DNA from: Saccostrea echinata
Taxonomy: Eukaryota
Direction of reading: 5' to 3'
Assembly: GCF_033153115.1 (NCBI RefSeq)
Contig: NW_026889772.1
Location: forward strand, 11,904,001 to 11,968,000
Length of the DNA stretch: 64,000 bases
Part shown: in pieces, positions 20,675 through 46,901 of the stretch
How the letters are laid out: the number at the start of each line of letters is the position of its first letter
Position numbering within the stretch: the first letter of the stretch is position 1
Program-made: the position numbers and the translations under genes
The notes under the pieces: model-generated
What the model saw: only the letters and a program-made list of their open reading frames with translations
Databases searched by the model: none
What the model was told of the DNA's origin: nothing

Positions 20675-23600
20675 TCATTTTCCATGATGACCATGATGAG
20701 CCACCACACTTTCCAGTCGAATGCGACTTAACCAGTAATGGCCATAACTAAGATTCCTCGAGTCCTTACGTATGAGCAGGGTAAAATTTCGATCGTTGAG
20801 AAATTGGTTTGTGTCGAGTTTGTGAATCTGCCATCTCAAATCCGCACCAAAGGTGCCATTATATGCTTCTTGAATGGCATGGTTGTTGAGTAAAATATCG
20901 ACTCTCCCAAGACCATTTATGGTTTTGCATGCGCTCAGTTGTAAGTTGGTGAGTGGTTCTCCATTCGTTTTGAAAGTGATGCTGACGTAACTGTTTGTCT
21001 CGGCCAGAATTAGGTAGTCATGTCTTGCGTGAGCGTGATTTACCGTGTAATTATTTTTCACCACTGGGAGTACCCTGTAATATTGCTCCTTTATACTTTG
21101 ACATATAGAGGCACTAACTCCAGCACTGTGACGACATGTCCTGTGTACTGGATCAAAGTCGAACAGAACAACATTCTCATACCAAGAATTAGAGCGATCT
21201 GCAAAATAGTTAAAATTATAATGGAAAAAATTAAAGTTGCTATGACAAGAGGCTTACGGATCTTAACTGCATTTGAGTGTCTATATGGCCCCCTTCCTTA
21301 TCTATAGTATTTTGTTCAAAAGAGAGTGCTTCAGACAAACCTAATAATGTATACTCCATGTATTAAGATATTTTTTATAAGAATTTGACGCATTGATTTG
21401 GGGAAGAATTTTTTGAATAAATCATTATAACGACCATAAGATTTCCGAAATGCTGACTTTTAACGACGTTGTTGAAATCTCTGTAACATCAACTTATTTT
21501 TCAGTAGCCTGTCATGTTCTTCAGTATCGAATAAGTTGGGCTACGTAAACACCATATGCAGGTGATAGTGAAATATATTACTACATGTATATAAATAGGT
21601 GACGATGAAAATGCTGGTCATCTCGTTTGTCATATAGTTTAGTTTGCCCTTATCGTCTATAGTCAGTAAAACATCAAAATACGAAACGGATATGGCAGAC
21701 TCTATAGCTGTAGTTTTTTTTTTTTTTTTTTTTTCAAGTTCACTAGGATATATCGAGTCAAAATATGAATGGAAGTAACTTGATAAAACGTCGTCGATAT
21801 TTCTGAATGTCTGTTGAAGGCCACAGCAAATGCATGTAGAAGTTTTTTGAAGAATTTCATCAACATTTACTATCAAAACAATTCTTTTAAAAGATAATTT
21901 ATAAGATTGATTGTGCATTTTAAAAGAGAATCATTAAATTATACGTTTCATTTATTGTATTTTTAAGTCTATACATAACATAGTTGATATTCAGCGTGTT
22001 ACATGTATAAACATTTTACTACATTCATTGTTTGATGTAAACTAGAATGTTGTATCTGTTTGTTTGCTGTACTAGTACTAAAGCGACTACATGAAATAAC
22101 AGAGGTCAGGTTCTATTTGATTACCTTCGTTTAGTGTTTCGTAGATTTCAAACCCTTTTAAATAGATAAACATGAATTGACAGTGTGCAATGTATTTAAG
22201 TTGACAAATAATTGTCTTAAAACAAAATACTAGTAAACAAAATAGTTTTCTTTTTCATCTAACAACGTTTGTCCATACACATGTACCTCGACAAAGTCCA
22301 CACGACTTTCTGCAGTATTGGGCTGTTTCACAGTCACTGCATATTGACGCTAGGGCAGCAGGATCACGACAGTCTGTCTCAGAGACATCTCCACAAGGCG
22401 TGTGTGGTGGTTCTTGAAAATGATCCACATCTAAACAAATATGTATGATAATAGAATCCAAGATTGCAACAAAACTTGAAATTCCCTATGTAAAACATAC
22501 CAGATCCCATTGCTATTACATATGTAACTGGTAGATTTAGAGGAACCGATTGCATGTGCTATCTATAAAAAATCTTTTGATCGCATGTTAAATTCTATAC
22601 CTGTGTTGCAAATCTCTTTAGGACAAAATTCAGTGTTATAAGACGTCACGTCTCTTTTTCCTATAACACCCTGCGCCGACAAACAAGCTGGTTTCTGTGG
22701 GGAAAAGATTGATATTGGAACGGATTATTGAAAATCGGTTATCTCTGATACCTGTATAATTAAATTATTTTTTCTGGTTCAGAATTGTATTGCTAAGATT
22801 TTATTTTTATGCCCCCGTATCGAAGATTCGGGGGTATATAGTTTTTGCCCTGTCCGTCCTTCTGTCTGTTTATCTGTTTGTCTGTTTGTCCGCAAAAACT
22901 TTAACATTGCCCATAACTTTTGATTGGCTGAAGCTATGGCTTTCAAATTGCACATGTGTATTCCTTGTGACAAGACCTTATTTTGGGTACCATCAAATTT
23001 GACCTTTTGACCTTGACCTTGGAGTTTGACCCAGTTTTGTAAAATTTTACTCTATGTTAACCTTGGCCATAACTTTTGAACAGTTGGTGCTAGGGCTTTC
23101 ATACTTCATATGTTTAATCCTTGTGACAAGACTTTTCTTTGGATACCAACAACTTTGACCCTTGATCTAGGAGTTTGACCTATATTTGAAAAACTTTAAC
23201 ATTGCCCATGACTTTTGGAAAGTTGGTGCTAAGGCTTTCCTACTTCATATATGTAATCCTTGTGACAAGACCTTCCTTTGGATACCAACAAATCTGACCC
23301 ATTGACCTTGAAATTGGAGTTTGACCTACTTTTGAAAAACTTTAATTTTGGCAATAACTTTTCAACGGTTGGAGCTTGGGCTTTAATACTTCATATATGT
23401 AATCCTTGTGACAAGAACTTCCTTTGGTATCATCGACTTTGACTCCTTGACCTTGGAGTTTGACCTACTTTTGGAAAATTTAACCTTAGACATAACTTTT
23501 GAACAGTTGATGCAAGGGCTTTCATGTTTAACATGTCTATTCCTTGTGACAAGACCTTCCTTTGGATACCAACAATTGTATTCTACTGATCTTGACCTTG

Positions 23601-46100: not shown

Positions 46101-46901
46101 ATATCACCCCTCTCTGAAACTGATGACGTAGTACACAGATAAATGACGTTTTTATTCTCGCGCATCAAAAAGTTCCTTGACAAAATGGTTTGTTTAATGG
46201 ATAAAAGTTATGTAATTGTTCCAAAAAGTTTTTTTCTTTTATCATATTTTGCTAGTTGTTAAGGGGTATATAATAAATTTATCATTATAACAGTAACTTG
46301 ATCCGAAGAGCCGTATCACGTCTCGTTGACAGAAGATAGTTGATAAAAGAAAAAACTTTTTGGAACAATTACATAACTTTTATCCATTAAACAAACCATT
46401 TTGTCAAGGAACTTTTTGATGCGCGAGAATAAAAACGTCATTTATCTGTGTACTACGTCATCAGTTTCAGAGAGGGGTGATATGGATTCAGAAAACCACA
46501 GTGTGGTGATCCGGAACGTCGGATCACATCGTCTCGTGATTGCGTAAATTCAACAGTAAAACTGAGTGACAAACAGTTGGGTATATAATAATAAAAAATA
46601 ATAGCGAAAATAATACAATTTAATAAGATAACGAGATAAAAAAAAAATTACTGTCAGGTTGCCCATGCAAAACTCCAAAGATTCCAAATAATAGCAAGAT
46701 TTCTACAAAAATATATAAATATGAATCATTATAAGTATTTATTTCTTTTTGCAGATATTTATTTGTACGGTCACACTTTGTACTTTACTAAAGATCTAGA
46801 CCTCAACAAAGACATATGAGGCTTATTTATGAGCACCTTAATGTCGAAAGGGTAGTTAATATATATAACAAAAATTCAAACTCACTTAGAGGCCAAGACA
46901 T
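40166..46901 (-). CDS. Paralogue C: secreted (partial Ly6) + ShKT + beta-sandwich-like protein; exons 3-4 not found
   Basis: Exons 46901-46886 (MSWPL), 46702-46652 (KILLLFGIFGVLHGQPD), 44214-44127 (KCAVSPNVLGKRSSSVTKTRYCKKEICNA, GC donor), 41428-41285 (ShKT CNDASASDCRDPSALLAICSDCETAQFCRKSCGLC), 40686-40166 (C-terminal domain). May be a pseudogene or an exon-skipping form. Confidence 0.75.
40770..41110 (-). mobile_element. HINE-like fragment
   Basis: GATCAGAAAAGCTCACTGAAGCTCACAGCTCGTGAGCTAAA is the reverse-complement counterpart of the HINE 5' end at 19105; adjacent (GACA)n. Confidence 0.6.
41915..42207 (-). mobile_element. tRNA-derived SINE with V-domain-like core
   Basis: Minus strand has an A-box-like GCGCAGTGGTTAGA, B-box GGTTCGAATCC, core CTTTCGGATGAGAC...AAACCAAGGTCCC and an (ACAA)n tail. 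Confidence 0.75.
42208..42355 (-). mobile_element. Naiad 3' UTR fragment abutting the SINE head
   Basis: GGATCAGGTGCCTAGGAGAAGTAAGCATCCCCTGTCGACCGATCACA. Confidence 0.8.
42820..43610 (-). mobile_element. Two tandem degenerate Naiad 3' fragments (42820-43378; 43390-43610)
   Basis: Homologous to the RT thumb region and 3' UTR of the 53870 element. Confidence 0.8.
44270..44890 (-). mobile_element. Possible LINE (L1/Tx1-like) 3' remnant
   Basis: (AAT)n/(AAAT)n tail at 44270-44310 next to degenerate coding-like sequence; family assignment is impressionistic. Confidence 0.3.
45993..46590. repeat. Long near-perfect inverted repeat (~250-bp arms, ~95-bp spacer)
   Basis: 45993-46244 is the reverse complement of ~46341-46590, with about one base difference in a T run. 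Confidence 0.95.

Follow-up and report, generated by a model that had tools for sequence, protein, structure and literature searches.

What might an oyster do with a protein in which two small cysteine-rich modules are followed by a large C-terminal domain that matches nothing in Pfam? The question is raised by a stretch of 64,000 nucleotides from the genome of Saccostrea echinata (assembly GCF_033153115.1, contig NW_026889772.1, positions 11,904,001 to 11,968,000), which as a whole is called the window here and to which all coordinates refer unless another locus is named. The window holds three paralogues on the minus strand, arranged head-to-tail: gene A (20675-28231), gene B (31823-35647) and gene C (from 40166). 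An initial annotation, made from the letters alone, had described them as secreted proteins consisting of a signal peptide, a three-finger domain of the Ly6/uPAR (LU) type, an ShKT domain and a terminal domain of about 170 residues. This order of modules holds for A and B, which are complete genes of seven exons with signal peptides and with reading frames intact in all seven. When the regions of A, B and C are compared in translation, the same set of conserved blocks is found in each (combined E ~1e-97), and barely any alignment is obtained between them at the DNA level. On sequence comparison, the array is best read as three old paralogues of a family confined to oysters (Ostreidae). The products of A and B may be lectin-like factors.

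No part of the protein is larger or better conserved than the terminal domain. It is encoded, together with the stop codon, by an exon at 20675-21198 in gene A, 31823-32340 in gene B and 40166-40686 in gene C, all on the minus strand. The A exon is 100% identical to the corresponding part of the NCBI S. echinata model LOC133191288 (P0038, 310 aa), and the C exon to that of LOC133191290 (P0044, 253 aa). Among themselves, the three exons share 47-61% amino-acid identity. They all end in H-H-x-H with no hydrophobic C-terminus, in agreement with the earlier description of a domain of about 170 residues that carries neither a transmembrane segment nor a glycosylphosphatidylinositol (GPI) tail. No Pfam match was obtained with the three exons at E up to 1, or with full-length proteins at E up to 10; here and below, domain tests at full length were run on orthologues from databases, among them the NCBI model of gene A, and the exons of the window were searched singly.

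On the other hand, the fold of this domain can be recognised. An AlphaFold2 (AF2) model of the B terminal exon alone, computed from a 20-row alignment, reached a mean predicted local distance difference test score (pLDDT) of 84.9 and a predicted template modelling score (pTM) of 0.82, and it consists almost entirely of beta strand with two short helices. Fold comparison by VIA-align against 48,161 PDB representatives placed carbohydrate-binding modules (CBMs) at the top: 7ay3, a CBM36 (Z 13.3, root-mean-square deviation 2.2 A, 120 of 124 residues aligned), 4qb1, a CBM35 (Z 12.4), 1ux7, another CBM36 (Z 12.4), and 2cdo, a CBM6 (Z 11.9). Eph ligand-binding domains, reelin and Cry domain III come next, with Z values of about 10. 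The same CBM families were returned by Foldseek (E ~1e-5), and the look-alikes that a protein language model proposed for this domain were CBM_35_2, CBM_6 and DUF6805, with scores of 0.88-0.90. We are therefore confident in the prediction of a beta jelly roll of the CBM6/35/36 type. The domain remains unknown to Pfam, as the initial annotation had implied by calling it unrecognised, but its predicted fold is a familiar one, and it fits the accompanying idea of a ligand-binding module.

The likeness to CBM6/35/36 has its bounds. The predicted oyster fold superposes on almost the whole of these modules, whereas sequence identity is only 6-13%. The known members, whose carbohydrate binding often depends on Ca2+, occur mostly in microbial glycoside hydrolases; the oyster module, in contrast, stands at the C-terminal end of an animal protein that lacks any enzyme domain, and it adds about 40 residues, three conserved cysteines and the HHxH tail. 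Its sequence relatives lie elsewhere. A profile comparison by hhalign links the domain to P0006, a protein of 540 aa with two copies of the domain and a DUF6973 (96% probability, E 2.6e-9), and distant relatives were found as single-exon copies in the S. echinata genome itself, with hidden Markov model (HMM) E values of 5e-10 and 1e-8. Three adjacent single-exon copies lie on one contig (C41, at 6587-8677 of that locus), and one terminal-exon copy on a second (C2, at 7890-8396 of its locus). The oyster family and these distant relatives have the motifs C-x-T-x-G-x-G-x-x-D-x-x-L-N and Y-W-L/I-S in common, which in the C2 and C41 copies take the form H-C-R-T-x-G-x-G and Y-W-L-S-D. The same copies gave sub-threshold Pfam matches to CBM-like, BetaGal_ABD2 and DUF6805 families, all carbohydrate-binding-like by description. 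Beyond the oyster family itself, sequence relatives are provided by this 'H-C-R-T ... Y-W-L-S-D' family alone. It is likewise absent from Pfam, but its proteins carry the domain in tandem (two copies in P0006, three exons on C41) and have neither LU nor ShKT. A wider family of CBM-like domains outside Pfam, with further copies in the oyster genome, is thereby exposed.

Are the exons that precede this domain really joined to it? For gene B, the answer comes from spliced sequence. Two public runs from two studies, X1 and X2, contain about 10-17% of the sampled words from the B region, which is roughly the exon share of B. A contig of 921 nt assembled from run X1 contains, in order, 31837-32340, 32451-32594, 33145-33244, 33636-33698, 35268-35350 and then 27 nt from 35439, and a contig of 385 nt from run X2 shows the first three of these junctions again. 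Every joint reads CT..AC on the plus strand, that is, GT..AG on the minus strand. Because the contigs are free of introns and follow the splice junctions exactly, the two runs are likely to be cDNA; the contigs carry no information on expression level. Thus, A and B are real, intact multi-exon genes, and B is seen spliced. The RNA check that had been proposed for the seven-exon models accordingly succeeds for the junctions of B exons 2-7, and exon 1 falls outside the contig.

In coding order, gene B begins with an ATG at 35647, and the coding part of its exon 1 (35635-35647; M-D-G-I plus 1 nt) matches the M-D-G-I and M-V-G-I starts of the Crassostrea gigas and S. cucullata orthologues. Exon 2 (35439-35492, 54 nt) encodes the core of the signal peptide. 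The X1 contig contains the 3' end of this exon and the junction 35439|35350, and the probable 5' boundary was placed by means of the acceptor site and the orthologues. The LU module is divided among exon 3 (35268-35350, 83 nt; finger 1, in the X1 contig), exon 4 (33636-33698, 63 nt; middle part, with its junctions in the X1 contig) and exon 5 (33145-33244, 100 nt; last part, in both contigs). Exon 6 (32451-32594, 144 nt) encodes ShKT and is likewise covered by both contigs, and exon 7, the terminal exon given above, is covered by that of X1.

Gene A has the same plan. Its ATG lies at 28231, and the coding part of exon 1 (28210-28231; M-N-R-L-A-M-K plus 1 nt, donor T|GTGAGC) matches the N-terminus of P0038 and of the S. 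cucullata protein P0037. Exon 2 (27887-27946, 60 nt, phase 1/1) encodes the hydrophobic core of the signal peptide, has an intact AG acceptor and a GTAAGT donor, and is homologous to residues 8-27 of P0037. It is followed by exon 3 (27612-27697, 86 nt; LU finger 1 with L-H-C-x-x-C and four cysteines, HMM E 4e-9), exon 4 (25022-25084, 63 nt; middle part of LU with two cysteines, read from the sequence and the family HMM), exon 5 (22601-22694, 94 nt; last part of LU, ending F-C-P-K-E-I-C-N, HMM E 2e-11) and exon 6 (22287-22430, 144 nt, phase 1/1; ShKT with seven cysteines, matched by the whole 37-position Pfam ShK model at E 0.036). Exons 3-7 are 100% identical to P0038, which jumps from exon 1 to exon 3, although the DNA has exon 2 intact and the S. 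cucullata orthologue includes it. The public protein LOC133191288 looks non-secreted because its model skips the signal-peptide exon at 27887-27946, and this omission is probably an annotation problem in the public S. echinata model.

Exon architecture ties the paralogues together. Splice sites read directly from the sequence show that all introns are GT-AG save one GC-AG intron in gene C, and the phases are conserved: 1/1 for the signal-peptide exon, 1/1 for the ShKT exon and 0/0 for the 63-nt exon. The earlier observation of a 63-bp exon 4 in A and B holds at the coordinates given above. The ShKT exons had been called identical as well, which is true of their length and phase in all three genes and not of their sequence, the amino-acid identity being 58-71%. 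One further observation on these regions concerns a 40-nt stretch in a gene A intron (23906-23945), which is 100% identical to 44910-44949, upstream of the LU exon of gene C.

The LU module is the part most difficult to assign. A and B both contain the motifs L-H-C-x-x-C and [F/Y]-C-x-K-E-[I/L]-C-N, and gene C has only the last LU exon. Of 14 family members, 13-14 retain C16, C81, C86 and N87 (numbered as in P0038), and nine cysteines are conserved in all, with the spacings C1-x2-C2, C3-x5-C4 and C6-x5-C7, which presumably resemble those of CD59. Like the Ly6/uPAR families (PF00021, PF00087), the oyster module opens with L-x-C-x-x-C and closes with C-x4-C-N. Ly6/uPAR domains, however, have ten cysteines including an adjacent pair (Cys 8 and 9), whereas the oyster family has nine, the first of the pair being F or Y in every member; the oyster proteins also differ in having no GPI signal and in being fused to ShKT and a jelly roll. 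Homology searches returned little: PDB sequences searched with a profile yielded nothing at E up to 10, and a word-based homologue search with the LU region returned only two A-type proteins of Saccostrea. The language-model look-alikes of the region all belong to three-finger families (UPAR_LY6, Toxin_TOLIP, cobra-type toxin, ecTbetaR2, Activin_recp and DUF753), with scores of 0.77-0.84 that are of the level of leads. A full-length AF2 model places hairpins at residues 11-19, 29-43 and 49-56, with pLDDT values of 51-68 there and of about 26-36 over the third LU exon.

A search of the whole genome in six frames with Pfam UPAR_LY6 gave only sub-threshold single-exon matches, none of them at this locus. 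The LU HMM of the oyster family, for its part, recovers the finger-1, middle and C-C-x-x-D-L-C-N exons of other oyster genes flagged by UPAR_LY6, collinearly but with individual E values of 0.03-5 among 1190 fragments. From motifs, cysteine spacings and weak look-alike evidence, we regard the assignment of the N-terminal module to the LU fold as quite probable. The same genome also contains clusters of canonical LU-type genes on contigs C12 and C77, with A-L-K-C-Y-x-C and C-C-x-x-D-L-C-N motifs and the same three-exon LU layout. On C12 a span of about 95 kb holds three loci, and on C77 two are found in about 55 kb; such spacing suggests tandem LU gene families.

In the ShKT module, the six-cysteine framework with its C-x3-C-x2-C end is complete and invariant (C101, C109, C119, C128, C132 and C135). 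The Pfam ShK alignment covers 37 of 37 model positions, but the score stays below the gathering score: the best is 18.8 bits (E 0.0024) against a cut-off of 20.9, and a match of any kind is obtained with seven of the 14 members. In UniProt, the automatic name of K1QAY5, the orthologue from C. gigas, is "ShKT domain-containing protein". Compared with ShKT domains in general (PF01549), the oyster module shares the framework that ends in C-R-K-S-C-G-x-C and differs by an extra cysteine, the invariant C122, which lies between canonical Cys3 and Cys4. The family thus has 19 conserved cysteines, nine in LU, seven in ShKT and three in the terminal domain. Since the LU module is one cysteine short (the canonical eighth) and the ShKT module has one too many, an interdomain disulfide between the two would be plausible on the basis of this cysteine balance. 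A survey of mollusc ShKT proteins lists single-domain peptides, M12-ShKT and CAP-ShKT architectures, and not the combination of LU, ShKT and jelly roll (PMC6409789).

How widely is this combination distributed? A profile built from the three terminal exons gave eight matches among 1.84 billion representative proteins, three of them below E 1e-30, all oyster. Orthologues are present in C. virginica (four loci), C. gigas (LOC105348244, UniProt K1QAY5), C. angulata, Ostrea edulis (LOC125648254), S. cucullata (two family loci on one contig) and S. echinata, whose genome holds exactly three family copies besides the distant relatives. Full-length orthologues with the same architecture and with signal peptides were found in S. 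cucullata, O. edulis, C. gigas, C. angulata and C. virginica. In a tree of the terminal domain, gene C of the window groups with C-type genes of Crassostrea with a support of 99/100, and the nearest neighbours of A and B are two different S. cucullata genes (82% and 94% identity). Between Saccostrea, Ostrea and Crassostrea, proteins of the B type share 82-94% identity. The C-type clade and the identity of B-type proteins across genera imply that the paralogue lineages predate these genera and have been conserved.

According to cluster look-ups and the homologue search, all NCBI-type models of the family are labelled "uncharacterized protein", and a literature search by locus names and accessions found no mention of the family. 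The earlier statement that no named family has this architecture is thus borne out by the labels of the orthologues and by the other architectures listed in the mollusc survey. What is new is the combination of modules, the apparent swap of a cysteine between LU and ShKT, and a family of animal CBM-like domains that is missing from Pfam; the folds of all three modules are known.

With these modules, the following mode of action can be proposed. The products of A and B are expected to be secreted and soluble because they have signal-peptide-like N-termini and no membrane anchor. The jelly roll would dock the protein onto glycan, which may be microbial, algal, or part of mucus or matrix, and the LU and ShKT modules would then be presented as protein-binding heads. 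We give a probability of roughly 0.55 to the reading that the family is a secreted lectin-like recognition or adhesion factor, with glycan docking by the modelled jelly roll. The following points weigh against it. A common fold is no proof of function, and the same jelly roll is also used for binding proteins, as Eph, Cry domain III and reelin in the match lists illustrate. No LU-clan Pfam family was detected by hmmscan at E up to 10 in any of the 14 full-length members, so that the LU domain of the initial annotation stands by motifs, cysteine spacing and weak look-alike evidence. In the full-length AF2 model, the region of LU and ShKT is poor (pLDDT 26-68), too poor for use in a fold search, and that model was discarded as a query. 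Finally, the RNA nature of runs X1 and X2 is only guessed, and the evidence from reads and contigs covers just one of the three genes, gene B.

The lectin-like reading turns an "uncharacterized protein" into a testable hypothesis, namely glycan binding by the C-terminal domain, for a family that now has a checked gene structure, a known distribution and a confident fold for a formerly unannotated domain. This matters because oysters depend on innate and largely secreted defence as well as on complex mucus and shell matrices, and secreted families specific to the lineage are prime candidates for both. The initial annotation had likewise put forward a defence, mucus or matrix effector as a possible role.

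Would the two small modules, rather than the jelly roll, be the active part? Three-finger and ShKT scaffolds are both used by blockers of channels and receptors. By analogy, the oyster proteins could be toxin-like effectors in which ShKT, the three-finger module or both block a channel or receptor of a pathogen, a parasite, a competitor or the oyster's own cells, with the jelly roll only targeting or stabilising the protein. That both small modules are built on such scaffolds and that the cysteine framework of ShKT is complete speak for this proposal, as does the presence of ShKT proteins among the components of gastropod venom (PMC6409789). On the other hand, most ShKT and LU domains of multidomain animal proteins are not toxins. 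Among the proteins listed in PMC6409789 are M12-ShKT and CAP-ShKT proteins with other roles. Oysters have no venom apparatus, and it is the jelly roll, not the knots, that is largest and best conserved. We therefore consider a toxin-like role unlikely.

A second possibility starts from histidine. The last 175 residues contain 11-17 histidines including the invariant H-H-x-H end, and a histidine-rich loop, N-H-A-H-A-K/R-H-D, is present in the A and B types. If this loop and the H-H-x-H end bound metal and the jelly roll bound chitin or another matrix polysaccharide, the family could consist of proteins of the shell, ligament or mucus matrix. The CBM-like fold and the restriction of the family to oysters would suit such a function. 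The loop, however, is missing in the C type and poorly modelled, the low-complexity or repetitive stretches typical of matrix proteins are absent, and neither proteomic evidence nor evidence of mantle-specific expression was found in the literature search. A matrix role is accordingly a doubtful alternative to glycan-docking recognition or adhesion.

The cysteine balance allows a bolder version of the preferred reading. LU and ShKT might form one rigid, disulfide-bridged unit that the CBM-like domain delivers to glycan-coated targets, an innovation of oysters that is possible but rather improbable as we judge it. In this version the targets would be microbes, parasites or the animal's own mucus or matrix, and the protein would be an immune effector with a glycan-targeted toxin scaffold. 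If true, a rigid, glycan-targeted LU-ShKT effector would be of a kind not described in molluscs.

Gene C departs from the plan of A and B. Three exons were found in the sequence on the minus strand: the last LU exon (44127-44214, 88 nt), the ShKT exon (41285-41428, 144 nt) and the terminal exon. The LU exon is followed by the GC-AG intron mentioned above (CAG|GCAAGT). The NCBI model P0044 uses the junctions of all three exons. This model has no signal peptide, LU1 or LU2; it starts with M-E-Q at 49569, in a first coding exon at 49561-49569 (minus strand), beyond the range 20675-46901 of the initial annotation, that encodes no signal peptide and is known from the NCBI model only. Such a start disagrees with the earlier placing of the gene C start near 46901, at M-S-W-P-L followed by a GTGAGT donor. 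Searches of the whole window in six frames, by tblastn with word size 2 and with the family HMM, found no signal-peptide, LU1 or LU2 exon of gene C, so the signal peptide once ascribed to all three genes is supported in A and B (exons 1-2) and was not found for C. A marginal match at 3668-3868 was considered as a missing exon of gene C and rejected, as it is not LU-like.

Gene C of S. echinata may be truncated, may have 5' exons that can no longer be recognised, or may be decaying. The absence of a signal peptide from LOC133191290 is probably, like the exon skipped in LOC133191288, an annotation problem in the public model. That the whole array consists of decaying or mispredicted copies without function is very improbable: gene C does have no detectable signal-peptide, LU1 or LU2 exons, an NCBI model that starts at M-E-Q without a signal peptide, introns filled with repeats and a foldback upstream, but no in-frame stop occurs in its three remaining exons, which retain all invariant residues of the terminal domain, the frames of A and B are intact in seven exons with B seen spliced, and orthologues are conserved in at least six other species of oyster.

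The foldback is a 247-nt inverted repeat, at 45993-46239 and 46345-46591, whose arms are 99% complementary and separated by a 105-nt spacer; it can be described as a foldback or as an element resembling a miniature inverted-repeat transposable element (MITE). It lies upstream of the gene C LU exon, within intron 1 of the NCBI gene C model, and yields two identical open reading frames (ORFs) of 48 aa on opposite strands. Similarities derived from repeats also link 28680-30580 with 42200-43590.

An assembly gap is present between B and C, at 36498-36626, which is 851 bp upstream of the B ATG. The gene structures are unaffected, since no exon touches it. When the runs were compared with the B region, no contig spanned the gap, and the bin 36328-36524 had zero depth. 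A dispersed repeat at 36640-37400 abuts the gap. It gave more than 6000 first-look candidates in the 923-Mb genome, its 40 scored copies are 87-91% identical, and its contig depth is many-fold above that of gene B in all three runs. A related piece lies upstream of gene A, at 30833-30998. The 126-aa ORF of the repeat beside the gap (36639-37019, minus strand) has no Pfam match.

Elsewhere in the window, two long ORFs on the plus strand are without a Pfam match: one of 753 aa at 53880-56141 and one of 317 aa at 49835-50788, the latter adjoining, on the opposite strand, the M-E-Q start of the NCBI gene C model. A further plus-strand ORF at 8842-9423 (193 aa) matches the GNAT acetyltransferases (Pfam Acetyltransf_3, E 9e-6), just above the cut-off.

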